Assembly (NCBI RefSeq): GCF_000143415.4
Contig: NW_003314296.1
Location: forward strand, 911,645-975,644
DNA: 64,000 bases
DNA from: Selaginella moellendorffii
Lineage: Eukaryota; Plantae; Lycopodiophyta
Direction: 5' to 3'
Shown: in pieces, positions 4,661 to 62,494 of the stretch
Layout: each line of letters opens with the position of its first letter
Position numbering within the stretch: position 1 is the stretch's first letter
Program-made: the position numbers and the translations under genes
The notes under the pieces: model-generated
Seen by the model: the letters and a program-made list of their open reading frames with translations, nothing else
The model's database searches: none
What the model was told of the DNA's origin: nothing

Positions 4661-5599
4661 TTAGAACTTACACACTTTCATACCTTTGGCAGTGGCCGGG
4701 CGTTCCATGCAACGCTCCTTCCAAGCCATGACGCTTGGGAAGTTCTCGAGGCCTATGACCTCCGCCCCCTTGTAGAAAACCTCGATACAGTAGATCCATG
4801 GGAAGGTGGCCATGTCCGCGATGGAGTAGCCGCCATCTATCAAAAACTCTCGCCCTTCGAGCCGCTTCTCCAGCACTCCCATCAGGCGCTTCACCTCGGT
4901 GGAGTAACGCTCCAGGGGGTATGGATGATCGCACTTATCCTTGGCATAGACGTAGAAGTGCCCAAACTAATGAAAGAAAGAAACAAATGAGAGCTCAAGA
5001 ACATGAAGAACAAAATCCCAAACAAGATAAACAAGGCCAAGAACACCAAGAACACCAAGATACAAGAACAAAACCCATGCATCAACGAAGAACACAACGA
5101 TGATCCATGAAATCTAGGAATTCACAAGTTTCTCTAACCTGGCCGGCCATTGGGCCAACGCCTGCCATTTGGAAGAAGACCCACTGGATTGTCTCCCACT
5201 TGAGCCTGGGATCTTGCGAGATGAACTTGCCCGTCTTCTCCGCCAGATAGAGAAGAATCGCTCCACTCTCGAAGACATTCATGGGTTTTCCATCTGGATA
5301 GCGAATCCAAATTAGAAAGATCGAAAAGACAAGCGATCAAAAGAGCAGCAAACCTGGGCCATTTGGATCGACGATTGCGGGGATTTTGGAGTTGGGATTG
5401 ATGGCAACGAAGTCCGGATGGAACTGCTCGTTGTTTCGGATGTTAAATGTGTGCGGCTCGTAGTCAAGCCCCATTTCTTCGAGCGCAATGCTCACCTGAT
5501 CGTTTAGATCAAACTCCGATCAAACAAGAGAAAATCCTTGGCTGTGATCAATACCTTCATGCCATTTGGAGTGGCAAGGCTGTAGAGCTGGATCGCCAT
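4661..5599 (-). CDS. Ure2p/Nu-class GST, copy 2 (4 exons)
   Basis: ATG at 5599, MAIQLYSLATPNGMK; near-identical to copies 1 and 3; stop at 4661. Confidence 0.9.
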
Positions 5600-5720
5600 A
5601 GCCGCGATGTGGTTCTTCCCCTAGGGTTTATCTTACATCCTTGACTTTTATCCACGTGGCGCGCACCTCACGGTCAAACTGCCACGTGTTAGAGTAAAAG
5701 TTTCACAACGAATCTTTTGA
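5600..5720. promoter_or_regulatory. Putative bidirectional GST/PPR promoter with two G-boxes
   Basis: Divergent ATGs 121 bp apart; CACGTG at 5653 and 5683. Confidence 0.55.
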
Positions 5721-8115: not shown

Positions 8116-8483
8116 TATATTCAATAAATTGCTATGCGTTGCATGTAGCTACGCTTAGTTTGCTTTAATACTAGTGTTATTATTACTTATTAATCCAATT
8201 GATCAAATCAAGTTTATAATTATAAGCATGTTTGTAATTTATATATACAAGATTAATTTTATTGCATATCAACTGTTAGATGGTAGAATAAAAAAGAATA
8301 TACTAGAAAAGGTTTAAGAAAGTTTATAAATTATAAACATGTTTATAAATTATAAATACAAGATTAATCTAAATGAATAACAACCGTTAGATGGTAAAAT
8401 ATCCTAGAATATTCAAGAATATTCTAAATATATCCACTACCATCCCAGTTCCCTATAAATTTGCTTAAGCAAACCAAAAATAG

Positions 8484-8745
8484 TTAGACAAGTTTTCTTT
8501 TTAGCAAAACTTCCTTCAAACTAAATTCAAACTGAAGAATCGCAATGCGATGCAGCTCCTGCGATGAGCGCCTGCTCACCTCGAGATGATTTCCAGACCT
8601 CTCTGGACGATGGCCTTGACGATGATTTTCCTGTCTGCCAAGCTTGATCTCCCATTCTTTCTCGATCACGCTCCATGCTGCGTCCTTGTCCCGTGCAAAT
8701 TCCACTAGAAGTTTCATGTAAGCCAGTGGCAGTGGGAGCTTAAGG
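8484..8745 (-). pseudogene. C-terminal fragment of the TPR-SET family
   Basis: EFARDKDAAWSVIEKEWEIKLGRQE matches the C-terminus of the 10.4-kb gene (KFARDKDAARSVMERAWESRLGRQE). Confidence 0.65.
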
Positions 8746-10179
8746 TACCAAGACGTTGGCGGTAGTCTATGTATCCATAAAAATTCCCCATAACCACCAT
8801 GGCAACTAGACGTGGCGAGAGACAGGACAAATGCGAAATTCCGAGGATCCCGTCATCACGTATCTCCAGGCTGGGAATCGGTGCTAGAGGAGCTTCTCCA
8901 GCAACTGCCTCGAACAGACAGCTTAAACATTAATAAGGGCGTCCTCCACATCAGAAGTTAAAAAGACAATGAAACACTGAATAGAGGGAGTTGACATTAC
9001 CGGAATTTATGATGGATCCTCGACCATCTGGGACTTTTTATTATAGGATTTAAATCATTATCACATCACGATCTTGTATAAGAGTTTCATCAAGGAAAAC
9101 GATGCAATCAGGGCCTCTTTCCCAAAATATTGCAAGAGAAACACCAAAACGATCATCAAGAACAGTTTCATGAAGAAATTCCATGCAGTCTGGGCTCCTT
9201 TTCCCAACATTTGCAAGAGAAACACTGACACGATCGCCAACAACTTCATCAGCTCCAACAGCAACACAAAGAACACCTTCCGGATTTCCAAGACGGCAAT
9301 TTCCATGAAAACCCTTGAGAGTCAGAGGGTTTATATGCAAGAGAACAACCTTTTCGCCACCTTTTTCCATACAAAAACCTTAATGAATCTTCCTGGACAA
9401 TCCATGTGCATCCAGGTGGCAGTGAAGCTTGAAACCTCAGATCTCACCTAAACGCAAAATCGATCAGTAACCTCCTTGGCAAGAGCCCTTTCAAACGCCT
9501 TCTTGATAACTAATGTGTTTAGCATCATAAAGTTTATTTGCTTCATATAAAAGATAGATAGAATTACTAATTCTGTATGTATCTTGCAATAGTTTCCCTG
9601 ATTGTGAGGCCTAATTACTCCAAATCAAATATTCTGCAACTGACAAGCAACAACGGAGGATCATTTGGATGATGTAAATTAGACCTTATTATTATTTTTG
9701 TGAGGGTCTAGAGCTTTTGTTACAAATGTGTGTTTCTATTTAGGCTAATTATGAATGCAAGACCTTCACTGAGAAGATGTATTTATAACATGGCGCCGCA
9801 CTTCACAATACAGCATCCAGGGAGTGCAATGCTGCGCTTTGAAAACCATAGGTTTAATTGTGCCGTGAAAAATCACTTTGTCTAATGGTGACTGACATGA
9901 AACGAAGTACTTCATGCTTGACTGAGCGCATGAATCTATCCACATGTTTATAGGCCTATCTTATCTTCAGTGACCAACGATGAGGACTTTGGGCAAGCAC
10001 AGTGCGCTCACGTGATCGACCAACGCCAGAGATTACGAGTGAGACTTACAGTCTGGATGTTTAGCCAGGGGTGCAATGGCGCATTTTGAAAGAAAACGAA
10101 ACAAAATATCAATCCCTCGATTTGTATCGTTACCGCCTTGTTCGGATATTCTATGGCATATTTTTTAACCACCCTTGCT

Positions 10180-10300
10180 TTTTAAAGGAAGAGCCCTAAA
10201 GGCACTTTATTCATTTTAGAGGAAGAGCCCTAAAGGCACTTTATTTCCTTTAACATAAGGATTCATTATTTTAAAGGAAGAACCCTAAAGGCGCTTTCCT
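10180..10300. repeat. Three short GGAAGAGCCCTAAAGGCACTTT repeats upstream of the TPR-SET gene
   Basis: Direct repeats visible here and again at ~24600-24715. Confidence 0.7.
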
Positions 10301-10410
10301 TACATTTGTCTCAGGGTTTTGGCTATGGTGCTCCACACCGCGGTGATGCTCCGCCTCGCCCACGTGCCAAGGGCGGCACCGATTCTTTCACACCATTCCT
10401 TCCCTAGGAT

Positions 10411-12334
10411 GTGTTGCGCTCGGATCCGCTGACAATGCTTGCTTCGATGCTCCTCCAGCGGGCACACGGCATTCCCTCCGCGGCGATCTCCACCATAGCT
10501 CCTGTCCGGATTGGAGATCTAGAGCCGGAATCGCGCGCGGTGGGGCGTGTTCTTCATGGATTTCTGGCCGCGGACGCGCTCATGATCGACGGCAGCGTCC
10601 AGGTACTCACAATGCTCGAGGATTCCAGCGGTGAATCGGTGCTGCTCGCGATCAAGCATCCGGTGGTGAGCAATGCCTCGGAGGTGGAGGTCCGGGCGAA
10701 ATTTCCTCGGGGGTCAAGGAGCCGACGCTGGTGCGGCCGCTGGACGATATGGGCGCGATCACGGCGATGGTCTCGGGGTTTCTCGGCGATTCAGGGCTGG
10801 ATCCGAGGTCCTACTGGTCCATCGCGCTTGACAATCCCGCGAACGTCGAGGTGCTCTCTTTCCTTGGCGAGGATTTCCTCCATGGACTTCAAGGTATGGG
10901 CCCCGCGAGGATCAGGATGGAAGGGAACAAGCTCTTCAAAGACGAGAGCTTTGAGGCTGCTGCTCAAGCCTATGGCTAGTGGCGCCGGCCAGGACGATCG
11001 CCAGAATCGGGTTCTAGCTCTCTCCAACCAAGCCGAGTGCTACCTCAAGCTGGGGTGATTTGAGGCTTGCGTCAGTGCTGCCAGTGCCGCTCTTGAGATG
11101 GATCCCAGCCATCTCAAGAGTGTGTATCGCAAGGCGTTGGTTTTGCTCAAGCTTCATCTCTACGACTGGTCGTGCCAGCTCTTGAGAGATTTCGCTGGGA
11201 CAGACCAAACCATCGACCAGCTATTCGAAAAGTCCCAGAAACTTGCCAGGCAAAGCCGGGACAGCAGCAGCGTCGCTCAGGAGATTTCCAACTCTTGTTG
11301 CCCGTGGAGCGATTCCAACAGCGAGACCAAAGCGCCAGAGCTTGCCGATTACGTTGGCCCGGTGTGAAGATGTGTGAAGACCCGGCTTGCGACCGAGACG
11401 CTGCTGCTCGGCTGCTTGAGATGGCCATGAAATCTCCACGGGTATACAAGCAGCTTCTCAGCCTCGTTTGCGAGGTGGCGGGCGACGAGCGAGAAGTCCC
11501 CGGCATGGAAACCTTCCGGCCGAACTGGACAACTGCCGAGGATTGGCCGATTTGCAGCACTGACAGCAGCGGCAGAGAAGCACTAGAAGGCATTGAAGTG
11601 AAGCGAACCTTTGAGATCGTCACCAAGGCATCCTACCATCCGAGCTCCTCGCGCGGCTTCGTCTACCTCGCAACATGGATCCTGCCGACCATTCCTGCGT
11701 TCCAAACGTCTGCAAAACGGACCTTGGAAAGGTGACCTGCTAGGTCGCGGCCCGAGATATCGATGCTGGAGAAGAGCTCGTTCTCTGCTACATCAATGGT
11801 GGCCATCCTTACAGGCGCAAGAGGCTGGGTTTCGCGTGCGACTGCAAGAAGTGCTACCTGGAGACGCTGCTGGACAAGGATCTCGCGGAGGTGAACGGCT
11901 ACTACAGGGACTTCGCCGAGGCAAACTTCGAGTTCAGGCTCAAGGGGGAGGCCGACCCGATCGAGATGGCGAAGACGCTGGAGACAGTTCTCGCGAGCAG
12001 GCTCAAGGACGAGGAGGAGCGACAGTGCTTGCGAGCGATTCACTGGTCGCTCTCCTTCTATTACCAGAGGCTGCAGAGTGGGGAGGCGGTGGTGGTGCCT
12101 GACGTCCCGGCGGCGGAGGTGGTGATGGAGGCCATGGAAAGGTTCACGACGGCCAGCGACGCAAATCTGGCATACATGATTTCTCTGGCGAAGTTTGCAC
12201 GGGACAAGGACGCGGCAAGGAGCGTGATGGAAAGAGCGTGGGAGAGCAGGCTTGGGAGACAGGAGGATCATCGCATTGTCGAGGCTTTTGTCGAGAGAGG
12301 TCTCGAGATTCTTGGAGCTTGGGGGTGGGCTTGA
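10411..12334 (+). pseudogene. TPR + SET-domain methyltransferase-like gene (ATXR1/SDG35-related), copy 1, disrupted
   Basis: TPR (EGNKLFK..LSNQAECYLKLG..KSVYRKA), ELADYVGPV, HSCVPN, post-SET GFACDCKKC; in-frame TGA at 11056 and frameshifts; GRGLFAT segment deleted. Confidence 0.8.
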
Positions 12335-14329
12335 GTTTCCCGTTTCTTCTTTTTCTTAATATGTTTAGGGAGGAGGTGAAAGTTTGGGATTTAAGGGGTT
12401 TTATGATGTTGTACCACAAATTTAAAGGCTTTGTGTGTTTAATTGTTTGGGCATATGGGGATTAAAAGAGAATTTAAGAATTTGTGAAGAGTGAATTTGT
12501 TATAAATAGCTAAACCTAAATAGGATTAAGCAAGAGTTGTATAAAAAATATGCCATCCGAACAAGGCGGTAACGATACAAATCGAGGGATTGATATTTTG
12601 TTTCGTTTTCTTTCAAAATGCGCCATTGCACCCCTGGCTAAACATCCAGACTGTGAAGGACCACCTATTAGACGTGTGCCGTCAAGTGTTCAAGGGGAGC
12701 GTGAGATTCGCAACATACCACACAGGTCTAAATCCACAAGCTAAAGGTCGTTTCTCCAGTGGAGTGGCACTGGATGCTTGAAGCGGCAGCTCTTGAAAGT
12801 ACTACAACTCGGCTGTAAGTCTCACTCGTAATCTCTCGCGTTTTTATCACGTTGGAGCGCACTGTGCTTGCCCAACGTCCTCATCGTCAAGAAAGTAACA
12901 AGGTGGCGAATGGTCGCTGAAGATAAGATAGGCCTATAAACATGTAACTGCTTTGGGATAGATTTATGCGCTCAATCAAGCATGAAGTACTCTGTTTCAT
13001 GTCAGTCACCATTATACAAAGTGATTTTTCACGGCACAATTAAACCTATGGTTTTCAAAGCGTAAGAACGTTGTCAGCATTGCACTCCCTGGATGCTGTA
13101 TTGTGAAGTGCGGCGCCATGTTATAAATACTTCTTCTCAGTGAATCGACAAAGGTCTTGCATCCATAATTAGCCTAAATAGAAACACACATTAACAAAAG
13201 CTCTCCCTCACAAAAATAATAATAAGGTCTAATTTACATCATCCAGATGAACAGCATCCTCCTTTGTTGCTTGTCAGTTACAGAATATTTGATTTGGAGT
13301 AATTAGGCCTCACAATCAGGGAAACTATTGCAAGATACATATAGAATTAGTAATTCTATCCATCTTTTATATGAAGCAAATCAACTTTATAGAAACGCAT
13401 TAGAAGCTCCACATGCTAAACACATTAGTTATCAAGAAGGCGTTTGAAAAGGCTCTTGCCAAGGCGAGAGCGGAGCAACTTGCCAGGGATTGCAAATTCA
13501 TCCAGGTTACTGATCGATTTTGCGTTTAGGTGAGATCTGAGGTTTCAAGCTTCACTGCCACCTGGATGCAGATTGTCCAGGAAGATTCATTAAGGTTTTT
13601 GTATGGAAAATGGTGGCGAAAAGGTTGTTCTCTTGTATATAAACCCTCTGACTCTCAAGGATTTTCAGGGAAATGGGTGCCGTCTTGGAAATCCGGAAGA
13701 TGTTCTTTGTGTTCCTGTTGGAGCTGATGAAGTTGTTGGCGATCGTGTCAGTGTTTCTCTTGCAAATGTTGGGGAAAGGAGCCCGGACTGCATGGAATTT
13801 CTTCATGAAACTGTTCTTGATGATCGTGTTGGTGTTTCTCTTGCAATATTTTGGGAAAGAGGCCCTGATTGCATCGTTTTCCTTGATGAAACTCTTATAC
13901 AAGATCCTGATGTGATAATGATTTAAATCCTATAATAAAAAGTCCTAGAGCAATTCTGCATATTCAAGGGAGTAAGTTATATGTTGGCTCGCCATGTCCA
14001 GATGTGGTCGAGGATCCATCATAAATGTCAACTCACTCTATTCAGTGTTTCATTGTCTTTTTAACTTCTGATGCGGAAATGTTTAAGCTGTCTGGTTGCT
14101 GGAGAAGCTCCTCTAGCACCCGGATCAAGCTCCATTGAAACACCTCTGCAACTTTCAAGCGGATATGACCCTGCAGCTCCGGCATACTGATTCCCAGCCT
14201 GGAGATACGCGATGACGGGATCCTCGGAATTTCGCATTTGTCCTGTCTCTCGCTGTTGGGCATGGTGGTTATGGGGAATTTTTATGGATACATAGACTAC
14301 CGCCAACGTCTTGGTTGCTCTTGACCACC

Positions 14330-14560
14330 TTAAGCTCCCACTGCCACTGGCTTACATGAAACTTCTAGTGGAGTTTGCACGGGACAAGGACGCAGCATGG
14401 AGCGTGATCGAGCAAGAATGGGAGATCAAGCTTGGCAGACAGGAAGATCATCGTCCAGAGAGGTCTGGAAATCATCTCCAGGTGAGCAGGTGCTCATCGC
14501 AGGAGCTGCATCGCATTGCGATTCTTCAGTTTGAATTTAAGTTTTGCCAAAAAGAAAACT
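14330..14560 (+). pseudogene. C-terminal fragment of the TPR-SET family (mirror of the 8.5-kb fragment)
   Basis: LAYMKLLVEFARDKDAAWSVIEQEWEIKLGRQEDHR. Confidence 0.65.
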
Positions 14561-14601
14561 TGTGTAACTATTTTTGACTAATAAAAATATACTACGAAAT
14601 T

Positions 14602-17142
14602 CTACACTATCATTAGACCTTTATTTATTTTTCTGGAGAGAATCTCTTGGACTCTTGCAGCTTTCCCTCGCTCTCCTAGGACGCTGTAAACATTAGAAAG
14701 CAGCACATAAGGCCCAGCTTCGTCACATCCCGGCATCTCAATTATCAAATCACCAATGCTCGAGGCTCTAGTGAGATCGCCATGTATGCAACAGGCATTC
14801 AAGAGTGCCGTCCAGCTGCTAGAATCCGGCAAAAACGGCATGCACTTGATCAACTCCTGCGCAGATTCCAGCTTCCCAGATCGGCCCAGCAGATCGATCA
14901 AGCACCCAAAATGCTCGCAGATTGGATCAATCATGAAGTCCACTTGCATCGAGAGAAAGTAGCCTCGAGCGGCCTCCACAAGCCCCGCGTGGCTGCAAGC
15001 TGATATGGCGGCCACAAACGTCACGGCATCCGGTACGAAACCCTGCTGCTGCATGAGCCCAAAGCACGTCAAGGCTGACATGTTATGCCCATTCTGGGCA
15101 TATGCCGTTATCATGGCGCTCCAGGATACCATGCTCTTTGTGGGCATGCCATGAAAGATCCTGGTAGCCTCGGATATGTTGCCACATTTTCCGTAGACGT
15201 TCACAAGCCCAGTGGCGACGCTCACGTCGGAGAGGAATCCACTCTCGAGGATCATCGCGTGGAGAGCTCTCGTCTCTCGCAGCGATGAAATCCCTAAGAG
15301 GGCTTCCAGTGCACCAACAAAGGTGAAGTTATTCGCATGAAAGCCATCCAAGTTGAGAGTTCTGTAAAGCAGCCATGCGTCGCTGTAGTGGCCATTTTGG
15401 GCAAATGCGAGAATCATCGTGTTCCATGACACGATGTTCTTCTCTTGCATCTTGTCAAAGATACACTTTGCTTGCTCCAGCTTGAGAACCTGGGCATAGC
15501 CCAGCATCATTGTGTTGTTTGAGACAACATCCCGGTCTGGCATTGTCGAAAGCATCTTCTCGGCGTCATCTATGAGCCCGTTTTGGACGTTCATGGTTAT
15601 CATCAGGTTGAAAGAGACTGTATTTTTTTCCTTCATTTGTGAGAACATCCTCTTGGCTGCCTCAAGATGCCCGTTTTGAGTATACGCATAGAGCATAGAG
15701 TTGCATAGCATGACATCGTGTTGATCCGCATTGTCAAACACAAGTTTGGCGCTGTCCAGATTCTGGCACCTCGCAAACATTGCCACTAATGCGGTAGCAA
15801 TCGCAACTTGGTGTGTAAACTCCATTTCCTCGACAATTGAGAGGACCATTCTTCCCAGATCGGTGTTTCCGATGTTAGAACAGGCATCAATGACCGCAAG
15901 AAGTGTCACTCGGTTTGGACGAAGTCCCTCGACATCCATTCTCATCAGCAGCTTGATGGAATTCTCTCCACGCCCGTTTTGGGCATTTGCAAAGATGATG
16001 GTGTTCCAAGATATCAGATTCGGCAGCGGCATTCGATGGAACAAGTCCGTGGCTTCCTCCAAATCCCCTCTCTGGCCAAACGCCGCAATCAGCGTGTTCC
16101 ACGTAGAAGCGTTCTGCATGGGCATATAATCAAACATTACTCTTGCGTTATAGAGCTGTCCACCCTGCACAAAAGCCGCCAGCATCGCATTCCACGTAAC
16201 ATCGTTTCGTTGAGACGCCCGGTCGAATATTTCTCTCGCTTCTTCAAGATGCCCATTCTGGGCATATGCTGCAACCATTGTCGTCCACGACACGACATTC
16301 CTTTGCGGCATTTTGTCAAAGATCTCAGTGGCTTTCTCGAGCCGACCAAACTTCCCGTACATGCTAACGCAGGCAGTGGCCACGGAGACATGCGCCATGA
16401 GGCCCAAATCAACGACATCATCATGGAGCTGTCGCCCCGTCACCTGGCAGCCGACAGTGGAACAGCAATTTATGCTGCTGATGAATGTTATGTTGTCGGG
16501 CTGGAGGCCCTCCAAATCCATGTTTCTGAGCATCTCAAGGGCCTCGTAACAATACCCAGCTTGGGCATATGCTGTGATCATCGCGTTCCATGAAATCCTA
16601 TCCTTTTCGGGAATTTCATCGAAGATTTCTTTCGCTAGCGAGACTTCCCCGGTGGATGCATAAGAGGAAATCATTGCAGTCCACGACACATCTGTTCTTC
16701 CAGGCATCAGATCAAAGAGATTCCTTGCGTCGTAAAGATGCCGGTTTTGGGCAAGTGCGCCAAGCATGATGTTGTACGAGAAAACGTTCCTGGGACGAAT
16801 TCTCGCGAAGAGACTCCTTGCTTCGTCCAATCCACCGCAAGCGCCAAACATCCTCACGACTAGATTGTTGATGACCAGCTCTGAGTTGTATCGATCGCGT
16901 AGGATCAAGGCATGGATCCGCCGTGCCGCGGCGAGGCATCTGGCGGCGCTGCATTGAGCTAGGAGCGAGCTGTAGAGGGTGAAATCTCCTCGGACCTCGC
17001 GGCTCTCGAGCTGGTCGAGGGATTTTTGGAGCTGGGTCTTTGCGAGATCTGGCACCGATTGATCCTTGGAAGAGAGATGGATCCCGAGAGAAGGAAATCG
17101 TTGCTGCGGGTTTCTCTTCTTCGAGCCAAGAACAAGGATCAT
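14602..17142 (-). CDS. PLS/E-class pentatricopeptide repeat protein (846 aa, no DYW)
   Basis: Repeated VVSWNxMIxAYAQNG motifs, ACSHAGLV, E-domain YVLLSNVY; uninterrupted ORF. Confidence 0.93.
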   Translation of the reverse strand: MILVLGSKKRNPQQRFPSLGIHLSSKDQSVPDLAKTQLQKSLDQLESREVRGDFTLYSSLLAQCSAARCLAAARRIHALILRDRYNSELVINNLVVRMFGACGGLDEARSLFARIRPRNVFSYNIMLGALAQNRHLYDARNLFDLMPGRTDVSWTAMISSYASTGEVSLAKEIFDEIPEKDRISWNAMITAYAQAGYCYEALEMLRNMDLEGLQPDNITFISSINCCSTVGCQVTGRQLHDDVVDLGLMAHVSVATACVSMYGKFGRLEKATEIFDKMPQRNVVSWTTMVAAYAQNGHLEEAREIFDRASQRNDVTWNAMLAAFVQGGQLYNARVMFDYMPMQNASTWNTLIAAFGQRGDLEEATDLFHRMPLPNLISWNTIIFANAQNGRGENSIKLLMRMDVEGLRPNRVTLLAVIDACSNIGNTDLGRMVLSIVEEMEFTHQVAIATALVAMFARCQNLDSAKLVFDNADQHDVMLCNSMLYAYTQNGHLEAAKRMFSQMKEKNTVSFNLMITMNVQNGLIDDAEKMLSTMPDRDVVSNNTMMLGYAQVLKLEQAKCIFDKMQEKNIVSWNTMILAFAQNGHYSDAWLLYRTLNLDGFHANNFTFVGALEALLGISSLRETRALHAMILESGFLSDVSVATGLVNVYGKCGNISEATRIFHGMPTKSMVSWSAMITAYAQNGHNMSALTCFGLMQQQGFVPDAVTFVAAISACSHAGLVEAARGYFLSMQVDFMIDPICEHFGCLIDLLGRSGKLESAQELIKCMPFLPDSSSWTALLNACCIHGDLTRASSIGDLIIEMPGCDEAGPYVLLSNVYSVLGERGKAARVQEILSRKINKGLMIV

Positions 17143-17253
17143 TCAAAGGTTCCGTTGAAACTTTGACTCTAACACGTGGCAGTTTGACTGTGAGATGTGG
17201 ACTAAAAATCAAGGATTTAAGATGAACCCTAGCGGAAGAACAACACCGCGACT

Positions 17254-18192
17254 ATGGCGATCCAGCTCTACAGCCTTGCCACTCCAAATGGCATTAAGGT
17301 ATTGATCACAGCCAAGGATTTTCTCTTGTTTGATCGGAGTTTGATCTAAACGATCAGGTGAGCATTGCGCTCGAAGAAATGGGGCTTGACTACGAGCCGC
17401 ACACAATTAACATCCGAAACAACGAGCAGTTCCATCCGGACTTCGTTGCCATCAATCCCAACTCCAAAATCCCCGCAATCGTCGATCCAAATGGCCCAGG
17501 TTTGCTGCTCTTTTGATCGCTTGTCTTTTCGATCTTTCTAATTTGGATTCGCTATCCAGATGGAAAACCCATGAATGTCTTCGAGAGTGGAGCGATTCTT
17601 CTCTATCTGGCGGAGAAGACGGGCAAGTTCATCTCGCAAGATCCCAGGCTCAAGTGGGAGACAATCCAGTGGGTCTTCTTCCAAATGGCAGGCGTTGGCC
17701 CAATGGCCGGCCAGGTTAGAGAAACTTGTGAATTCCTAGATTTCATGGATCATCGTTGTGTTCTTCGTTGATGCATGGGTTTTGTTCTTGGATCTTGGTG
17801 TTCTTGGTGTTCTTGGCCTTGTTTATCTTGTTTGGGATTTTGTTCTTCATGTTCTTGAGCTCTCATTTGTTTCTTTCTTTCGTTAGTTTGGGCACTTCTA
17901 CGTCTATGCCAAGGATAAGTGCGATCATCCATACCCCCTGGAGCGTTACTCCACCGAGGTGAAGCGCCTGATGGGAGTGCTGGAGAAGCGGCTTGATGGG
18001 CGAGAGTTTTTGATAGATGGCGGCTACTCCATCGCGGACATGGCCACTTTCCCATGGATCTACTGTATCGAGGTTTATTACAAGGGGGCGGAGGTCATAG
18101 GCCTCGAGAACTTCCCAAACGTCATGGCTTGGAAGGAGCGTTGCATGGAACGCCCGGCCACTGCCAAAGGTATGAAAGTGTGTAAGTTCTAA
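17254..18192 (+). CDS. Ure2p/Nu-class GST, copy 3 (4 exons)
   Basis: MAIQLYSLATPNGIK|VSIALEEMGLDYEPH...GMKVCKF; three GT-AG introns. Confidence 0.92.
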
Positions 18193-18329
18193 GTAGTGTG
18201 TAAAATATAACTAGAATAATTTAAAGGTGTTCTATGATAAGAATTTAATGACCCAAACCTAAAAGGAAATATAAGAAATCTCAAGCTAAGATCTATATGC
18301 TGTTCAAGCTAAGATTTTATCTATCTATA

Positions 18330-18600
18330 TGCTGTTTTGATAGTCTTGTGGTGCCCAACTGGAAGCATGAGACTAATGGATCGAAAAATGCAAGTTGAAT
18401 TATCATTTTTGCATCAGTGGTGTCCTTGTTGTTGTGGTGATTCTGCTCACTGGCCTTGCCTTCTTCTTTTTTGCGGCCATTCAAGGTCTCTGATTATGGT
18501 TGCCTTATACATGTATTTGCCATCAGAACTCCATGCATTTCAGGTAATTGGCGAGGGATGAGGTTGTCTCCTTGATTGCGAGGTTTATATGTGTTTCCTG
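18330..18600. repeat. Diverged direct repeat of ~1186-1430 (downstream flank of GST copies 1 and 3)
   Basis: Shared gctgttttgata.tcttgtggtgcccaa.tggaagcatgaga...caggtaattggcgagggatgag. Confidence 0.8.
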
Positions 18601-52400: not shown

Positions 52401-53736
52401 GGAATGTTTCACATCCATCTTATAAGCCCAAGAGCAAGCTCGCACATTACGGTACAAAAAGGTAACCAAACTCCATACCCAAGGAACAATTGCGAAGTTT
52501 TTGCACCCAAACGTGTACCCACTCGGATCATCATTTTCATCTCTGCGTATGTAATAAGACTAGTTGTCTAATCTCATTGGATAGCGCTCGCTGAGATGTA
52601 TCCTCTAATACCAAATGTAGCGCATGTGGTTTTTACCCTTTATTCTATAATGAATTACCATCATATAACACCACGAAGCGGAATCTAAACCCTCCATGTG
52701 CCACGTGTTATATGCCATGTGTCATATGCCATGTGTCCATAGGATAGTGGTGTGGAACCCGAGGTTCAGGACCTTGGGCCACTAAACAAAGGAATGGTGC
52801 CAAACTCCCAAGCATAGAGCCAAGGAGTGACGGAACCGGACCATGGAGCAACTCCCGAGCATACAGCCCAAAGAGCGAAGGGACAAAAGCCCAGAACGAT
52901 TTGGAACAGTCCTGGAGCAACCAACATCCCAATGCCAGGACCAGCATATAAAATGGAGCCAAACGGAGTCTGACGCTATTTCGGCATATCGATGGCTTAA
53001 TGCAAGGACATGGGTACTTCACTAGCTAGCATAGTGTAGAATTTGGGCTTAGACCCAAGTCAGACGCAGAACAAAGACAGGCACACTTAGACTATGCCTC
53101 AAGTTAGTTGGCTATGCTCGACCTACCCACTATCTCTACTATACATTTGGAACCCCCCATAGTCCCCCCTTGAGGAACACACACTTTGGGCTTTCACCCC
53201 AAACCTCCCTTAGTATCAGGAGTTAATCTTTGGGACAAGCTTGAAACTTACTAAATATGGAATGTCCTTAGATTGCGAATTTGGACACAGGACAAGCACT
53301 ATTGTGTTCAAGACAATCTCTACTTTCCGTAGATATGCTAAATGAGCAAATCTGGACACTTTTCATATATAGCATTTGGGACCAAAGTGAGACTAACATA
53401 AAGGGCATGATAGTGAGGGTGTTTGGCAAACACGGTAAATTATCATCTAACGAATATTGAAGGACCAATCTTAATATTGTAAGAGTTCCCAACACTAGCA
53501 AGTGCAAGTCAACGAATAAGTTTCTCTAACCAGGTCAAGTATGTTTGACTAAATAGACATTTAGAAATTCCTTCCTTATGCTCATCTGGTCAAGTACACA
53601 CGCGAAGACCAACTTAGGCGGAGATTGATAACGAGTCCAGCAATATCGACCTCCTGCTATCGTGGCAGTAAGGAAAGAGTGTCCATAAGGACTGGCTGAC
53701 AGGTAACTTTTGATACCTGAAGTCACATTCACGACA
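46403..53736 (-). mobile_element. Long-LTR retrotransposon (family B, gypsy/chromovirus-like or LARD), decayed interior
   Basis: LTRs 46403-47535 and 52616-53736 (TG...CA), TSD ATAAT on both sides, degenerate tRNA-Met PBS (TGGTATTAGAG) beside 52616, PPT beside 47535. Confidence 0.9.
47602..48276 (+). mobile_element. TRIM (675 bp) with apparently identical 162-bp LTRs
   Basis: LTRs 47602-47763 and 48115-48276, termini TGTAGCGCA/TGCGCTACA, PBS TGGTATCAGAG, PPT GAAGGGGGGGTGAG, TSD CAAAG. Confidence 0.95.
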
Positions 53737-54999
53737 ATAATAAACAATCTTAAAATCATATATTTGAAGTTTCAAAACCCATCAAGAAAAATGAACAACC
53801 AAATTATTTTGCTTTAATAATAAAGTAAATGCAGCATGATCACCTTCTAGTTTATTTAGTGAATTAATGACTTCTCTCTAGACAATCCAGAAAATCAACA
53901 GTATAAGGAAGAGGGTACACATCTAGGATAATCATTTTATTACAAACGATAGTTGATGCAGAAACGAATACTCCCATTAAACTTTGTGATAAGATGAGGT
54001 TCACACACCCAAGGACTCTGTAACTTTTGAATAACACCTTTTTTAACATTTTCTTGACGTTTACACATAAAATCTTGATCTCCTTTGGTGACTAACAATG
54101 TATAGAAACCTTGATTGAACAAGCATCCCCAATTGGAATAGAATGCAGTGTTGCAATCTTAGCCCCAAACAACAAATCAAATTTGAAGAGATCAACATAC
54201 TCCTTCATAAACTAGTCAACCACTACAACATAAAGATTGTTAAGGGAACTAAAGAGGGAATAGAGGAACAAGATGAAAACATAAGAGCAAATAATGGGGA
54301 GACAAAAGTGATGGAAGCAGATGTAAAAGAAAAGGAATGAAGAGAAATAAAAATGAGAGGAATAGAAGAAATATAAAAAAGTATAAAACAAATAGGAGAA
54401 GCATTAAAATCACACTTGGCATGATTATACCACAACCAATTTATATTAAGGATGAAGTCAAATGCTTGATTCAGCACTACTCGCAATAATTGAAACTCAA
54501 GCTCAATATCACTTACATACACAACTAGGTTTGCCTCATCCTATGCATATGTATATGTATGCCATTGCTATAAATAATGAAAACTAACTTTGCTACATGA
54601 CACAAATGTAGATGGCAATATGTGGCAACTGGTTGAATAATAGAAGATAAACTTGAGTCTATATCAACTAACATGGAGAGAGTAATAAAAAACCTCTTGT
54701 TATAAAAACAAACTTAGAAGTAAACACTATAGGAATTGGTGCTGAGAGAACCCTTTTATGATACTCTTGAAAGAATAATGAAAAAGTCATTGACTTATTC
54801 GCACAAAGACCATTCACTACTCATATGACTTTTTTATTTTCCAAAAGAATCTCTATATCAAGATCTTCCACTGCAATAACACTAATAAGATGTTGATGCT
54901 AATGCCTACACCCAGGAAATGAAGGATACCAATTTGGAAAATGCTAAGAATGCATATATATGTGACCAACCTCATCACACACCCAGTAGTGGACATCAC

Positions 55000-55080
55000 T
55001 GTCATAAATGTGATTGTGGGTATCAAAAGTTACTTGTCAACAAGTCCTTTTGGATATCCTTTCCTTATTATCACGACAAT
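55000..55080 (+). mobile_element. Truncated 5' end of a third family-B LTR
   Basis: tgtcataaatgtga..gtatcaaaagttac..tttccttattatcacga matches the reverse complement of 53660-53736. Confidence 0.75.
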
Positions 55081-55562
55081 TTATACCAAAATGCTACTTG
55101 TGGTGATAAGTTGAAAGTGCATAATGCCATGGTAAGGCTTATTTCTCTCTATATTCTATAGCTTGCTAGATTCAGACTCATGACTAATCACGTGGTGACT
55201 TTATAGCAAAGTGCTATGATAAGTGGATTAATATCGCAATAACATTATAGCAAAATGCTACTTGTGATGTGTGATGATGAGCTGATCTCTTTTTTCCACA
55301 GCATGTTGGATTCAGACTCTGGACTAATCACTTAGTTACATTATAGCAATATACTGTTTATGGTGATGAGCTGGAAGTGCACAAGGCCATGGTAAGGCTT
55401 GCTCCTCTTTATTTTCTACAACTTACTGTACTTAAACTTGAGATTAGTCACTCATCCACTTTATAGCAAAATGTTACTTGTCATGATGAGTAGAGTAATC
55501 ATATGACGAATTTACAGCAAAATGCTACTTATGGTGATAAATTGGAAGTGCATAAAGCCATA

Positions 55563-56176
55563 TGTAAGTAATTAAAGAAAATGACTTAAGAAACAATTCA
55601 TAAAGGTTTAAATATAAAAGGAAAGGGCTCATAAATAGGAGTGCACCCCCTTTTCCAATCAGTTAAAGGTTTTGGGATATTTAAGGTTAAGTGTCTTTGG
55701 GTTTGAATAGTATTGGGCAGGGTTAAACATCTTTAAGCTTGAATAATATTGAGCTGGATAATCTTTTAAAAATTCCAAATTCAAGAGTTTACATTTGGTA
55801 TTAAAGGGGTCTTAAGTCTGACTCTGTTAGTTAGCTAAAGGAATCACTGTTAGTTAGTTAGGGGAATCACACCACATATTGATATTGATATCTAGCAAAT
55901 CCAATTTACCTAATCCGAGAGGTAAAGTGTCAAGAGAGTGGGGCTCTTGGGAGAGCTGTGGCTCTTAACTTTTGTTTAGGGAAGCATAGTGGATTCTAGA
56001 TAACCAATGAGAATAATTTGAGACACAATCCCTAAAGGTTTAAATATAAAGGGAAAAGGCCCATAAATAAGAATACACCGGTTAAGGGTCTTAAGATATT
56101 TAGGGTTAAGTGTCTTTATATTTGAATAATATTAGGCTAGATGTCCTTTTGGGAAGTCCAAATTCAAAAGTTTACA
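55563..56176 (+). mobile_element. Old TRIM-like element inserted in the array
   Basis: LTR1 55563-55793, PBS-like TGGTATTAAAG, LTR2 ending TTTACA at 56176; decayed TSD CCATA/TCATG derived from the array's CCATG. Confidence 0.75.
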
Positions 56177-57159
56177 TCATGGTAAAGCTTGCTCCTCTAT
56201 TTTTTTCCAACTCGCTAGATTCAATCTCAAGACTAATCATTTAGTGATATTACAATAATATGCTAATTATAGTGATGAGTTGCAAGTGCATAAGACCATG
56301 GTATGGCTTGCTCCTCTATATTTACTGCATTCAAACTAAGGATTAATCACTCATTCACTTTATAGCAAAATGCTACTTGTGGTGATAAATTGGAAGTGCA
56401 CAAGGCCATGTTAAGGCTTGATCCTTCCTATTTTTTGCAGCTTGTTAGATTTAGACTCATGAGTAATCACTCAGTGATGTTACAATAAAATGCTACTTAT
56501 GGTGATGAGTTGGAAGTGCATAAGGCCATGGTATGGATTATTGCTCCCTATTTTTTGCAGTTTCCTAGATTCAAACTCTAAAGTTAGTAGTTAGTGGCAT
56601 TACAGCAAGATATTGCTTATGGTGAAAAGCTAGAAGTGCAAAAAGCCATGGTACGGTTTGCTTCTCTATACTTTCTGTTGCTAGCTGGATATAGATTTAG
56701 GACTAATGGCTAGGTGATGTTATCGCAAAATGTTGCTTGTGGAGAGGAGTTGGAAGTACACAAGGCTATGGTAAGGTTTGCTCCTCTTTTTTTTTGCTCA
56801 CTACAAACAGCATTTTGCTATAACATCACTAAGTGATTAGTCTCAAGTTGGAATTCAATGAGCTTGAGCTGGAAGTGCACGAGGCCATGGTAAAGCTTAC
56901 TCCTCTCTATTTTCTGCAGCTTGTTGGACTCAAACTCATGACCAATCACTCATTCTCTTTATAGCAAAATATTACTTATCATGACGTAGGGATTAATCAC
57001 GTAGTGACTTTATAGCAAAATGTTGCTTGTGGTGACAAGCTGAAAGTGCATGATGCCATGGTAAAACTTTCTTCTCACTATTTTCTATAGCTTGCTGTAT
57101 TTAGACTTAGAACTAATCAAGTGGTTACTCTATAAGACAATGCTGCTTATTATAACAAG

Positions 57160-57305
57160 CTACTATACTCAAATTCAATGACATTTAACCCTAAATATCC
57201 CAATACCCTTAACTGATTAGGAAAAAGAGTGCATTTTTTTTCATAGACTTTCTATTTTTGAACCTTTATAAATTGTATCCTGAATTTTATGTTTATTTGC
57301 TTGCA
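57160..57305 (-). mobile_element. Reverse-oriented LTR fragment of the same old TRIM
   Basis: ttaaccctaaatatcccaatacccttaactgattaggaaaaagagtgca is the reverse complement of the 55640-55690 LTR core. Confidence 0.65.
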
Positions 57306-59445
57306 ATAAGCTAAAATTGTATGAGACCATGGTAAGGCTTGCTCCTCTCTATTCTTTGGATTCAAACTCTAAATTAATCATTTAATGACTTTACAGCAAA
57401 ATATTGCTTATGTTGACGAACTAGAAATGCATAATATATGGTAAAGCTTTTTACTCTCTTTTTCTGTAGCTCTCTAAATTTAGAGTTGGGATTAATCAAG
57501 TGGTGACTTTACAACAAAATACTACTTGTGGTGATGAGTTGAAAGTGCATGAGGCTGCAACTCTCTAGATTCAAACTCGGAACTAATCACTTGGTAATAT
57601 TATAGCAAAATGTATAAGTGCACATGGCTATGGTAAAGCTTGCTCCTCTATTTTTTCTACAACTCATTAGATTCAGACTCAAGACTAATCATATTGTGCC
57701 TTTAAAGTTTAATTACTATTTATGGTGACGAGCTGAAAGTGCATGATGTCATGATAAGGTTTGCTTCTCTTTATTTTCTATAGCTCACTTGTTACTGGTG
57801 ATTTTACAACAAAATGCTACTTGTTATAATGAGTGAACTAATTTAATAGTGATATTACAGCAAAATGATGGTTGTGGTGATGAATTGAAAGTGCATAATC
57901 TCATGGTAAGGCTTGTTGCTCTCTATTTTTTACAGCTCTCTAAATTCAGACTTAAAACTAATTATGTATTGAATTTATAGCAAAATCTTGCTTCTTGTGA
58001 TCAGCAGACGAAACATACAATGATTTTTCAACAAAATACTATTTATTGTGACTAGCTAAAAGTGCATAAACCCAATATAAAGTTTATTTTTCACTATTTT
58101 CTGCAACTCATTAAATTCAAACTTGGGACTAATCACATAATGACTTTATAATATAATATTGTTTGTGGTGATGAGTTAGAAGTGCATAAAGCCATGGTAA
58201 AGTTTACTCCTTTCTATATTTTACAGCTTGTTGTACTCATGCTCAAAATTAATCATTCATTCACTTTAGAATAAAATGTTACTTGTGGTGACAAACTACA
58301 AATGCACAAAGCTATGGTAATGTTTGCTTTTTTCTATTTTCTGCAACTCATTGGATTTAGATTTGGGATTAATCACTTGATGACATTATAGCAAAAAATT
58401 GCTTGTGGTAATGAGCTGGTATTGCACGAGGCCATAGAAGGCTTACTCCTCACTATTTTTTGCAACTTGCTAGATTCAAACTTGGAACTAATTACTTGTT
58501 AACTTTATAGCAAAATGTTAATTGTCGTGATAAGTGGACTAATCACACAGTGACTCTACAGAAAAATACTACTTATGGTGATGAGCTGAAAGTGCATGAC
58601 GCCATGGTAAAACTTGCTTCTTACTATTTTCTATAGCTTGCTGGATTTAGACTTAGAACTAATCACATGGTGAATTTACAAAAAATTGTTACTTGTTATG
58701 ATGAGTAGACTAATATGGCATTAACATTATAGCAAAATGCTACTTATGGTGATAAGCTGAAAGTGCACGAAGCCATGGTAAGGCTTCCTCTCTATTTTTT
58801 TTCAGCTTGCTGGATTCAGACTTAGGAATAATTACTCATTTGACTTTATAACAAAATACTCCTTGTCATAATGAGTGGACTAATTTGGTAGTGACATGAC
58901 AGTAAAATGATGCTTGTGGTGACAAGCTAAAAATGCACAAAGCCATAGTAAAGTTTGTTTTTCTATTTTTGGATTGAGACTCGGAACTAATCACTTACTT
59001 GTGATGATAGCTGAAGCCATAATAAGGTTTGCTCCTCTCTATTTTTCTGCAACTTGCAAAATTCAAATTTTAGACTAATCATATGCTGACTTTACACCAA
59101 AATGCTACTTAAAGTGATGAGCTGAAAGTACACAAGGCCATGGTAAAACATACTCCTCTCTATTTTTTTCAGCTCATTAGATTTAGACTCAAGACTAATC
59201 ACTCTGTGATGTTATAGCAAAATACTATTTGTAAGCCATGGTAAGACTTATTCCTCCCTATTTTCTTCAACTCACTGGATTCAAACTCAAAATTAATTAC
59301 TTGGTGATGTTACAACAAAATGCTGTTTATTGTGAAAGTGCACGGCCATGGTAAGTCCTACTCTCTATTTTTTTGAGCTCACTAAATTCAGACTCAAGAT
59401 TAATCACTTCAAGTGACTATTTGTGGTGACAAGCCAGAAGTGCAT

Positions 59446-61190
59446 CAACCCCGACCCAGACACCAATGGCTCCAGCCTTTGGAGTTTCGATGCAGGCATT
59501 TGGTAGCAGCACTCCAGTTTTTGGAAGTCTTGCATTTCCAGCTTTTGGTAGCACGACTCCATCAGCTGCTGTGGAGGCTGACCAAAGACAGGAGTTTGGC
59601 CAAACTGCAGAGCTGGAGTTCCAAACATGGACAAAGAAAGCTGTGCTTGGCCGAACAAGGGACTTCTTTGAGTTTGTCCAACAGTGACGAGGAGCCTGAA
59701 GAGTCCAAACTGTGAACAAAGAGAAGGAGGAAGAAAAACATACATACTTGGTGTGCCGAACAAGGACGTGCTTCCAAATGCTGGTGTGCTGCTCAAACCA
59801 AACGCTGGAGTGGGCCAGTTGACAGCACCTTTGGCAGTACCCCTTCCGGAGAGGGAAGGATTAGACTTTGTTTAGCTACTTTCTTACTCTGACTAGTGCT
59901 TGCTGGTTCTACAGGCAATTTGTGATGCCTATGCTAATTTTCGTTATGCATTCAAGGTAAGAGAAGTGTATTATGCTGTGAGACTCACCACCATTTTGTA
60001 TGCAACATCTTTTGCTTAGTGTCATGGCGCCTTCTCAGCAATTCAAACCTCCAGGCGTTTCTGATGTAAACATGAATCATGATTTAGAGTATATGTGTAA
60101 CTTTTTGCTTCTCTTTTTTCCTAGACCATGTGGGCCGAAGTGATGAGCAAGCTTGAGAAGATGGGAACCGAAGATAGGGAGTGGCTATACCCAGAGCTGC
60201 TGTTGGGATTCAAAGACCTTTCAAAGCGACTTCAGGTGAGGTTTCCCTTGAGTTGAACTTTCTGTTACAATCGTTTTTAGGCTGACATGTGTCATGAGGC
60301 AGCTGCAAGACGAGGCAATCTCTTCAGATACGAACAGGCTGCAGGCTACTGAAAGCAACATGAAGCTGGTGAGCTTTGGATGCCACTGTGCCTTGTATCT
60401 TAGCTCTCCCGTTTTTTTGCAGTTGCAAAGACATTTCCAGGTCATCATATTACCTTGGCTCCAACGGTTCAGACTCAAGGAGCAGCAGCTGCAACGGAAG
60501 CTGTTAAAGGTCTGTTTCTTTTTCCAAGAGCGTGGTGGTTTTCTAGCTTGTTTTCTTTTTCACAGCTTACGAGAATAATCGAAAGGCTTGAAGCGAAGGG
60601 CTTATGGATGCCTTTGACAAGGTCTGAAACACTTCTGGAAGAAAAGTTACGAACGCTGGCACGACAAGTAAGTCTTTCTTTGATACAACATAGGAACTTA
60701 AGCGTACCCTTACTTTCTCAACGACAGAGCTTCCAAGGAAAGTGGACTCGGTCTTGTCGATTTCACGCCTGTGCGCAGGTGTAGGAAATGCATCGTTTCT
60801 ACCAGGCCAACTCGATGAGCAAAGCTTGACTGACATTCAAGAGGTGCAGTCTTTTGTTTCCAATGGTAGCTCTCCATTCTTATCAGAGCGTGTTTGTATC
60901 TCAACGACAGAACTTCCAAGCAAAGTGAACTCGGTCTTGTCGATTTCACGCCTGTGTGCAGGTGTAGGAAATGCATCGTTTCTACCAGGCCAACTCGATG
61001 AGCAAAGCTTGACTGACATTCAAGAGGTGCAGTCTTTTGTTTCCAATGGTAGCTCTCCATTCTTATCAGGACGTGTTTGTATTCCAGGTTCTACGCAAGC
61101 AAACTGAAGCTATATCACGTCTTGCTGGTGTGCTCAATGAGAGACATCGAGATTATAACTGAGGACGAAGGTCGCCTAATGGGCACCGAC
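59446..61190 (+). pseudogene. NUP54: Nucleoporin NUP54 pseudogene (internal inversion and duplicated exon)
   Basis: FG repeats; YAFK.HLLLSV..KPPGVSD.MWAEVMSKLE..GFKDLSKRLQLQDE..LQRHFQ..LPWLQRFRLKEQQLQRKLL..DEQSLTDIQEVLRKQTEAISRLAGVL; damaged splice sites. Confidence 0.85.
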
Positions 61191-61360: not shown

Positions 61361-61433
61361 ACGTGTAAAGCGCAGTGGATAGAGCGTCTGTTTTCGGAGC
61401 AGAAAGTCACAGGTTCGAACCCTGTCCATCGCG
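61361..61433 (+). pseudogene. tRNA-Arg(TCG)-derived pseudogene or SINE head
   Basis: D arm, anticodon arm TCTGT-TTTCGGA-GCAGA and T arm ACAGG-TTCGAAC-CCTGT intact; acceptor stem pairs only 2 of 7. Confidence 0.7.
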
Positions 61434-61650: not shown

Positions 61651-61770
61651 ATTGGTAGTTAACAAGCCTTTTCAAGAAAAAGGGAGAGAAAGAGTTATTA
61701 ATGTATCACCATTGGTAGTTAACAAGCCTTTTCAAGAAAAAGGGAGAGAAATAGCTATTAATGTATCACA
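61651..61770. repeat. 60-bp tandem duplication
   Basis: attggtagttaacaagccttttcaagaaaaagggagagaa at 61651 and ~61710. Confidence 0.9.
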
Positions 61771-62494
61771 CTTTAATCTCACTATATTTCACAATTTCAC
61801 AATCGCTGGTCGACTTACCAGACCTTTCTGCATGGAACCACTGGATCTTCCGCCCCTCGAGTTGGCGCCCTCTCCTGGCGAGCCCGTCCGCTACATTATT
61901 CTCATATACCTTGTCGTGCGCCTTGACTTTGCACAGCCGGATCTCCATCCCGCTCTTTGCTGCCGCACCAACGATGCACTGCAGGAGTGGCTTGAGCTGG
62001 ATACAGTCGGGGTGCTCAGGCCGGCACTGCGCAAACTGCAACAGCTTCAGCGACTGCAAACTGTCCGTGTAGATATTCAGCTTGTTGGACTGCCAGTAAC
62101 CTCGAGCCCTGTACAGCTGCACCGCCGCGATGGAGTCGTGTATTGCAAGAAGCTCCATGTTGAGCGAAGACACGATGAGGCTGTCGACGATAGGGTTGCA
62201 CCAGCCGTTCTCCTGCGGGACTTGCACCGCCATGCCCGTCCCTTTGTGGGACTCCTCTGCCGACAGGAAGTAGACGCCGTACCCTGCCGAGAGCGACTCT
62301 TTATCGAAGGATCCATCAGTGAATACATTCCAAGGAGAAGATGCTTTTATTTCATCAAGTCCTCGCTCACGAGTACAAATGGTAATGGCCCATTTCTGCC
62401 ATGGCTTTCCTAATCTGACTCCTACACCACCAAACACCTTCTTGTTTGCGATGGACACTTCATCCTCGCCAGCTTTGCACTTGAGAGCCATCAT
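61766..62494 (-). CDS. Stand-alone RNase HI-like domain ORF (242 aa)
   Basis: VFTDGS, NMELLAI, IYTDS, KVKAH and NNVADGLAR give a complete D-E-D-H-D set. Confidence 0.75.
   Translation of the reverse strand: MMALKCKAGEDEVSIANKKVFGGVGVRLGKPWQKWAITICTRERGLDEIKASSPWNVFTDGSFDKESLSAGYGVYFLSAEESHKGTGMAVQVPQENGWCNPIVDSLIVSSLNMELLAIHDSIAAVQLYRARGYWQSNKLNIYTDSLQSLKLLQFAQCRPEHPDCIQLKPLLQCIVGAAAKSGMEIRLCKVKAHDKVYENNVADGLARRGRQLEGRKIQWFHAERSGKSTSDCEIVKYSEIKV

Follow-up and report, generated by a model that had tools for sequence, protein, structure and literature searches.

Features of the locus

A degenerate tandem repeat lies immediately upstream of a NUP54 gene in Selaginella moellendorffii. Within the window, that is, the whole 64,000-nt stretch of DNA that was analysed, it occupies positions 55079-59448 on the forward strand and is composed of head-to-tail units of two lengths, 120 nt (about 30 copies) and 51 nt (8 copies). 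The array has Ty3/gypsy debris on its left and the NUP54 start codon on its right; the island in which it is found is AT-rich and depleted of CpG, and the array sits in an 11-kb island of transposon debris. The features of the region are as follows, with no strand assigned to the two insertions.

53660-55078, reverse strand: rearranged Ty3/gypsy debris, extending from the zinc knuckle of gag and the protease region as far as RNase H (tblastn; blastn; Pfam on reference ORFs; zinc knuckle read from the sequence)
55079-55568, forward strand: array block A, with 120-nt and 51-nt units (nhmmer hits at 55088-55561; left edge from the end of gypsy homology)
55569-56178: transposon-like insertion, 610 bp long, within which about 420 nt are directly duplicated (gap in monomer hits; direct repeats; blastn; junctions)
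56179-57162, forward strand: array block B, in which 56798-56864 is a 65-nt piece of a unit in inverted orientation (nhmmer; inverted repeats)
57163-57305: second, partial insertion of the same family as the 610-bp element, in the opposite orientation (inverted repeats; blastn, 76-83% identity; junctions)
57306-59448, forward strand: array block C, with the clearest example of the 171-nt higher-order repeat at 58392-58903 (TRF period 171; 120/51 spacing; nhmmer)
59466-61160, forward strand: NUP54 gene, FG repeats and then a helical domain (matches of exon pieces to PDB; Pfam)

An earlier note on this DNA had reported a degenerate tandem array here, and the array is confirmed. TRF gives periods of 120, 171 and 98 across it; repeat families of 13-23 copies are spaced by 120, 171, 239 and 290 nt; and a unit profile gives 31 nhmmer hits, which cover 3004 nt between 55088 and 59448. 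The left edge lies at about 55079, where 7-8 nt of unit tail follow the end of gypsy homology, and the right edge is at 59448. In the rest of the window, neither the consensus nor the profile found a significant match with nhmmer. About 14 of the long units are near full length, and pairwise identity among these averages 72%. The 51-nt unit is a deletion derivative, corresponding to the 120-nt unit minus positions 26-94, and both lengths are divisible by three. These 8 short units were missing from the description in the earlier note. A diagnostic C at position 16 is common to the short units and absent from the long ones, indicating a single origin of the short form followed by amplification. 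One long and one short unit make up a 171-nt higher-order repeat (120 + 51), of which three follow each other in the clearest run. Thus, a monomer repeated head-to-tail in many copies (the 31 profile hits and the 8 short units, over 4.4 kb), a higher-order structure and variants spread by amplification, as characterize satellites, are all present. The proposal of tandem amplification of a 120-nt unit bearing splice-like signals was correct.

The array is interrupted twice. The 610-bp element breaks a unit at its GTAAG, with 8-9 bp of duplicated array sequence on both sides, and the insertion at 57163-57305 is bordered by a 9-bp duplicate (AAYAAGCTA). On the left, the debris matches the pol and gag ORFs of the window's own gypsy element (tblastn E of 6e-31 and 6e-8, respectively), and 54995-55076 is an inverted duplicate of 53660-53741. 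Since the cut lies within gag and an inverted scrap of that gypsy element comes next, the junction between the array and the gypsy debris is a rearrangement. An ORF of 80 codons at 54919-55161 runs in frame from this flank into the first unit; it was dismissed as accidental because the flank consists of opposite-sense gypsy sequence and the inverted scrap.

On the right, the NUP54 ATG and FG-coding sequence begin 18 nt past the end of the array. With exons searched singly, two exon pieces match residues 47-84 and 133-169 of NUP54 in PDB entry 9sob_H (E of 2.1e-9 and 3.4e-4), and Pfam Nup54 hits in the gene are collinear and sub-threshold. The FG-coding neighbour had been named correctly as NUP54 in the earlier note. 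Fusion of the array in frame with the FG exon was considered and rejected, as the frame of the unit differs from the FG reading frame. NUP54 itself carries a young tandem duplication (2 x 183 bp) of an exon and its intron, 1.3 kb from the array. Its FG exon also has an apparent inversion of 300 bp, within 59.4-59.9 kb. For the ORF at 61766-62494 in the window, no homologue was found.

Splice-like signals and decay of the units

The consensus quoted in the earlier note, a 45-nt exon followed by a 75-nt intron, is correct as a version in which C and G have been restored, except that position 114 is not G (T in 19 copies, A in 9 and G in 4). This restored consensus has GTAAG at 46-50, CTAAT at 98-102 and YAG at 118-120, and many of its restored C/G positions are minority states among the actual copies. 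Its 40-codon frame is open solely in forward frame 0, one of six frames. Of the dinucleotide shuffles of the unit, 0.18% combine GTAAG, CTAAY and YAG motifs with in-frame lengths and an open exon, and 0.5% contain a pyrimidine tract together with YAG. The founder unit thus resembles a gene more than a random satellite unit would, and because a single monomer would seldom carry all these signals by chance, a gene-derived founder, with the satellite born from gene structure, is possible. A stronger acceptor, a pyrimidine tract with CAG at 56-75, comes only 30 nt after the donor, so that a 90-nt exon with a 30-nt hybrid intron fits equally well and the assignment of exon and intron is ambiguous. 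The short 51-nt unit has no donor and was amplified nevertheless.

The copies have decayed in a strongly biased manner. Among 758 changes relative to the restored consensus, 518 (68%) are C>T or G>A and 35 are A>G or T>C. Plant DNA methylation occurs at CG, CHG and CHH (PMC9256654), and base retention in the array follows these contexts: 0.40 at CG, 0.58 at CHG, 0.72 at CHH and 0.94 at A/T. The observed/expected ratio of CpG falls from 0.92 in genic DNA to 0.41 in the flanking island at 44-55 kb and 0.13 in the array itself, and GC content is 35% in the array against about 52% in the restored consensus. Methylation is therefore the probable cause of the decay. Repeat-induced point mutation of a fungal genome, which the transition bias and short introns might suggest, and which would concentrate C>T at CpA, was rejected. 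The host is a lycophyte, as shown by the PPR-DYW genes in the window and by protein matches that are best to S. moellendorffii, and decay follows the order CG > CHG > CHH.

Against this background the splice signals do not stand out. The earlier note had asked whether GT, CTAAY and YAG were kept better than other positions; instead, they decay at the background rate of their context class, with z values from -2.1 to +0.9, where the retention statistics are approximate because the copies share ancestry within the array and are non-independent. Retention is 0.85 at donor G45 and G46 (z +0.9, CHH class) and 0.66 at acceptor G120 (z +0.8, CHG class). It is 0.56 at branch C98 (z -1.2 within its context class) and 0.38 at acceptor C118 (z -2.1 within its context class), the latter decaying faster. 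The putative exon and intron do not differ in retention in any context class (Mann-Whitney p 0.32-1.0), and codon position has no effect on retention of C/G (0.68/0.68/0.65). Stops are present in the 40-codon frame of 13 of 15 long units and in the 15-codon exon part of 3 of the 15, and no ORF of at least 50 aa is found between 55162 and 59403. Thus, neither the splice signals are kept above comparable positions, nor is the frame kept with the exon more constrained than the intron.

The search for relatives was likewise negative. Pfam gave no match for stop-free units. A profile built from 13 translated unit pieces, a decayed one of 39 positions and low power, matched none of 1.84 billion protein representatives at E<=0.001, so that a related protein or source gene is lacking within the reach of that search. 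The unit has no match in the allelic locus L001; the allelic scaffold GL377606.1 is collinear and 97-99% identical, and its matched region is 37 kb from the array, whose allelic counterpart is predicted near 314-319 kb of that scaffold. A 21-nt probe, which matches 4 copies in the window, retrieved 3 contigs from the JGI metagenome collection, but these were rejected as relatives: they represent one common unrelated sequence, which is not tandemly repeated and matches by chance over about 35 nt. A literature search gave no description of the 120-nt repeat.

Origin and nature of the array

The array is probably an ordinary decaying satellite, amplified at the DNA level and non-coding, whose splice-like signals are not under selection. 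Its anatomy, its mutation spectrum and the absence of constraint are direct observations, to which the following account adds a likely mechanism. A 120-nt unit would have been tandemly amplified at the DNA level by unequal crossing-over or slippage. Loss of positions 26-94 in one unit would then have produced the 51-nt derivative, which may have been amplified together with long units, in higher-order repeats of 171 and 291 nt. Lying in a silenced, transposon-rich island, the array was presumably eroded for the most part through deamination of its methylated cytosines, and it would have been a passive target of the two transposon insertions. The splice-like signals are best regarded as frozen features of the founder unit, which may have been cut from the exon-intron region of a short-intron gene or may have acquired them by chance.

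The former origin would require that the founder was cut from such a gene by tandem segmental duplication and then amplified as non-functional DNA. Breakpoints in two introns or in two exons would yield either a 45-nt exon with a 75-nt hybrid intron or a 90-nt exon with a 30-nt one. We regard this as possible, if somewhat doubtful. The rarity of the signals in both sets of shuffles argues for it, as does the one open frame in six of the restored unit, and the 183-bp duplication in NUP54 indicates that such a process operates here. However, about half of random units would be expected to have one of their six frames open over 40 codons, restoration of C and G removes stops by construction, and the case was picked after the fact out of a very large scan. 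Moreover, neither the window nor the allelic locus holds a source, there is no protein relative, and the metagenome matches are due to chance. This reading concerns origin alone and is compatible with an ordinary satellite.

The earlier note had drawn two inferences from the gene-like structure, and only that of a satellite born from gene structure keeps some probability. The other, a relic of a modular repeat-protein gene in which symmetric 45-nt micro-exons with their own introns were once spliced with combinatorial exon skipping, is very improbable, since decay proceeds at the background rate, stops occur and no source gene or related protein was found. The restored unit does have donor, branch-like and acceptor motifs; its 45-nt exon preserves the frame, and its intron size is within the range of the adjacent NUP54 introns. 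Against these resemblances, splice sites, exon relative to intron, and codon positions all lack excess conservation, 3 of 15 exon parts contain stops with no surviving ORF, and donor-less short units were amplified. Neither the 15-residue nor the 40-residue module was found in the proteins searched. Promoter-side and terminal exons are missing from the array, which lies directly between the truncated gypsy debris and the start of NUP54, and the second acceptor 30 nt past the donor makes the exon-intron assignment ambiguous. Equally hard to credit is the wider version, in which the array is an eroded, once-spliced gene of dozens of micro-exon and intron cassettes, or in which the best-kept units upstream of NUP54 give spliced non-coding transcripts. 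Also unlikely is an origin of the array as a tandem repeat inside a transposable element, such as one in the untranslated region of an LTR retrotransposon. Plant satellites arising in this way are documented (Vondrak et al., 2020, PMC7004042), and the array abuts a truncated Ty3/gypsy fragment within the debris island. However, a more complete gypsy copy of this family, at 19.6-23.4 kb, is devoid of the unit, the flank is cut inside gag rather than in an untranslated region or LTR, and the array has no LTR or terminal repeat around it, its right edge being unique NUP54 sequence. A match of the monomer to the internal repeat of a known transposon, which the earlier note had named as a refutation of its proposal, is thus not supported.

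Comparison with known systems and implications

In its head-to-tail units, its deletion-derived subrepeats within higher-order repeats, its transposon insertions, its strong C>T and G>A decay, its CpG depletion and its lack of coding capacity, the array resembles the satellites and minisatellites of methylated heterochromatic islands in plants. It differs from plant satellites in that a single array of 4.4 kb is known, which is neither centromeric nor subtelomeric but lies 18 nt away from a housekeeping gene's start codon, and in that its unit has an unusually complete set of splice-like signals. As a short array beside Ty3/gypsy in a plant genome, it is also similar to satellites derived from LTR retrotransposons (PMC7004042), but the related gypsy in the window is without the unit and the junction is rearranged inside gag. 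A third comparison is tandem exon duplication, such as that in NUP54. The unit has the size of one short exon plus one short intron, its length is divisible by three, and when restored it has a donor, a pyrimidine tract and an acceptor; however, the array is without a host gene, a kept frame, a related protein or selected splice sites, and its roughly 38 units go far past known series of exon duplications.

As it stands, the array is ordinary repeat biology and matters little, other than as a clean example of how gene-like a methylated plant repeat can look once its consensus is restored. If the founder was a gene fragment, the array and the 183-bp duplication in NUP54 would suggest that short-intron genomes such as that of Selaginella often seed arrays of exon-intron size, which would be of modest interest for the origins of satellites. 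If instead a once-spliced cassette gene had existed, the array would be a record of tandem exon-intron duplication building repeat proteins or collapsing into satellite DNA. With 18 nt between the end of the array and the NUP54 start codon, the promoter of that gene must be contained in the array or displaced by it, and this bears on whether this NUP54 allele is expressed.

Anatomy of the array

The array (55079-59448, + strand) consists of degenerate units in head-to-tail order. Tandem Repeats Finder gave overlapping calls with periods of 120, 171 and 98 (66-79% matches), and a repeat finder delimited families of 13-23 copies whose starts are 120, 171, 239 and 290 nt apart. An nhmmer profile built from the consensus of an earlier note gave 31 hits, which total 3004 nt and lie between 55088 and 59448, with no significant match in the other 60 kb of the window. 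The period of 120 and these 31 matches bear out the tandem amplification of a 120-bp monomer that the note had placed here. Pairwise identity among the 14 near-full-length long units is 72% on average. Eight short units of 51 nt each, which had been missed, consist of long-unit positions 1-25 joined to 95-120, and they alternate with long units to form a 171-nt higher-order repeat, most clearly at 58392-58903. Position 16 is C in the short units but G in the long ones, which points to a single deletion event, whose product would then have been amplified further. The array is broken at three sites, by two element insertions and one inverted unit fragment.

Interruptions of the array
55569-56178: foreign element of 610 bp inside the array; ~420 nt of this longer copy are directly duplicated within it
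57163-57305: partial copy from that element family, 143 bp, inverted relative to the copy at 55569-56178
56798-56864: inverted unit fragment of 65 nt (repeat finder)

At both element insertions, 8-9 bp of array sequence are repeated on the two sides, resembling a target-site duplication. Their family is unclassified, and terminal inverted repeats were identified for neither insertion.

Flanks and genomic setting

An AT-rich island, with a GC content of 35-38% against ~50% in the genic part, ends on the right with the array. The observed/expected ratio of CpG falls from 0.92 at 24-44 kb to 0.41 at 44-55 kb and 0.13 in the array itself. To the left, the array is bordered by minus-strand debris of a Ty3/gypsy element, which extends backwards from RNase H as far as the zinc knuckle of gag and breaks off within gag; next comes an inverted piece of this element, 77-82 nt long, whose end lies at ~55078. 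On the right, the neighbourhood of NUP54 claimed in the earlier note holds: its ATG lies at 59466, 18 nt beyond the array end, and two exon pieces match the solved chain 9sob_H (E 2.1e-9 and 3.4e-4). Two consecutive pieces gave collinear, sub-threshold matches to Pfam Nup54, the exons having been searched singly.

The FG region of NUP54 (59466-59870) is apparently inverted internally: the + strand encodes 5 FG in 32 residues at 59466-59560, whereas from 59561 to 59870 it is the minus strand that encodes them, 8 FG in 155 residues whose N-to-C order is as expected for NUP54. With the strand switch, the + frame meets TGA at 59685, which suggests a possibly broken allele or else an assembly that may be inverted at this point. 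At 60716-61082, one NUP54 exon (ending ..LDEQSLTDIQE) and its intron also form a recent tandem duplication of 2 x 183 bp (96-97% identity), a fresh exon-intron duplication beside the old array. The exon was counted at 65 nt, so that inclusion of both copies would shift the frame. Further right, a partial tRNA-like match at 61369-61425 (Rfam, 36 bits, model positions 9-63 of 71), where ARAGORN found no tRNA, may be a tRNA-derived SINE or pseudogene. Beyond it, at 61766-62494 on the minus strand, an ORF of 242 residues carries an RNase H domain (Pfam E 1.6e-9); no identical product is on record for this ORF, and a word-based protein search gave no homologue at E<=1e-20.

The window holds several PPR and PPR-DYW genes, including an 846-residue PPR ORF with its best matches in Selaginella moellendorffii. 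On scaffold GL377606.1 (GCA_000143415.2), window 8.9-18.5 kb has a collinear counterpart locus of 97-99% identity, which is thus the other haplotype or another assembly. Window 1-18500 and GL377606.1:355275-377836 share a duplicated block of PPR and GST genes in inverted arrangement, and several window segments align to this allelic locus in both orientations (94-99% identity).

Gene-like features and possible sources of the unit

The earlier note read the unit as a 45-nt exon with a 75-nt intron. Its consensus had C and G restored at decayed positions, and many of the restored bases are minority states among the real copies. In this restored form, the splice-like motifs (GTAAG at 46-50, CTAAT at 98-102, YAG at 118-120) and the open 40-codon frame stand, the latter in + frame 0 only of the six; the G given for position 114 does not (T in 19 copies, A in 9, G in 4). 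Among the actual long units, a stop is present in the 40-codon frame in 13 of 15 and in the 15-codon exon part in 3 of 15, and no ORF of at least 50 residues lies between 55162 and 59403 on either strand.

For a single monomer, the gene-like look exceeds chance. The full signal set (GTAAG, YAG 60-100 nt downstream, CTAAY 10-40 nt before YAG, in-frame intron length and open exon) appeared in 0.18% of 5000 dinucleotide shuffles, and a 15-of-17 pyrimidine tract followed by YAG in 0.5%, rarities that concern an array chosen out of a very large scan. They speak for a founder unit derived from a gene fragment, a possible but unproven origin to which we give about one chance in three, because that selection and several other points weigh against it. 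The exon-intron assignment of the signals is ambiguous: the donor is followed, at a distance of only 30 nt, by a pyrimidine tract with CAG (56-75), so that a 90-nt exon (76-120 plus 1-45, frame unchanged) with a 30-nt hybrid intron fits equally well as 45 + 75. Over 40 codons, one open frame of six is no rarity, and stops vanish by construction since C and G were restored.

No source gene emerged from the window, the allelic locus, Pfam or protein databases. Further unit copies are absent from the rest of the window and from the allelic locus; stop-free units have no Pfam match; and among 1.84 billion representatives, no protein reached E<=0.001 against a profile built from 13 translated unit pieces, a search of limited power with a decayed 39-position profile. 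A 21-nt probe matching four window copies yielded one unrelated metagenome sequence, in three contigs. The array was also considered as a tandem repeat internal to a transposon (PMC7004042), a possibility raised in the earlier note itself; however, the unit is missing from a related gypsy copy at 19.6-23.4 kb, and array and gypsy debris meet inside gag.

Decay of the units and the probable role of methylation

The transition damage noted earlier is evident: 518 of 758 differences from the restored consensus are C>T or G>A, against only 35 reverse transitions. Consensus-base retention is 0.40 in CG, 0.58 in CHG and 0.72 in CHH context, and 0.94 at A/T. All three cytosine contexts are described as methylated in plants (PMC9256654), and this ranking is the one expected from deamination of methylated cytosine in a plant. 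Retention at the splice positions was scored as z within each position's own methylation-context class.

Retention at splice positions
Donor G45 and G46: retention 0.85, z +0.9
G50: retention 0.59, z -0.9
Branch C98: retention 0.56, z -1.2
Acceptor C118: retention 0.38, z -2.1
Acceptor G120: retention 0.66, z +0.8

The splice positions are unremarkable within their classes, and the A and T bases within the motifs, retained at 0.88-1.0, behave like the remaining A/T positions. Preferential conservation of the motifs is thus contradicted by decay at the background rate, an outcome that the earlier note had itself named as refuting. In no class does retention differ between exon part (1-45) and intron part (46-120) (Mann-Whitney p 0.32-1.0); by codon position, C/G retention is 0.68, 0.68 and 0.65 for positions 1, 2 and 3; and the short units were amplified although they lack the donor. 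With no extra retention at splice sites, exon or codon positions, with stops and with no longer ORF, a spliced repeat gene is not supported.

The array is best explained as an ordinary local satellite-like array. Its unit would have been amplified at the DNA level, and the array remodelled by the deletion-derived subunit and higher-order repeats, invaded by two transposons, and brought by rearrangement to its place between the gypsy debris and the start of NUP54; methylation-driven transitions would be eroding it still. The inverted unit fragment and a direct unit, 53 nt apart within 56798-56970, provide arms of 53 nt with 72% complementarity. If transcribed, these arms could fold into a hairpin and feed small-RNA-directed methylation of the array.
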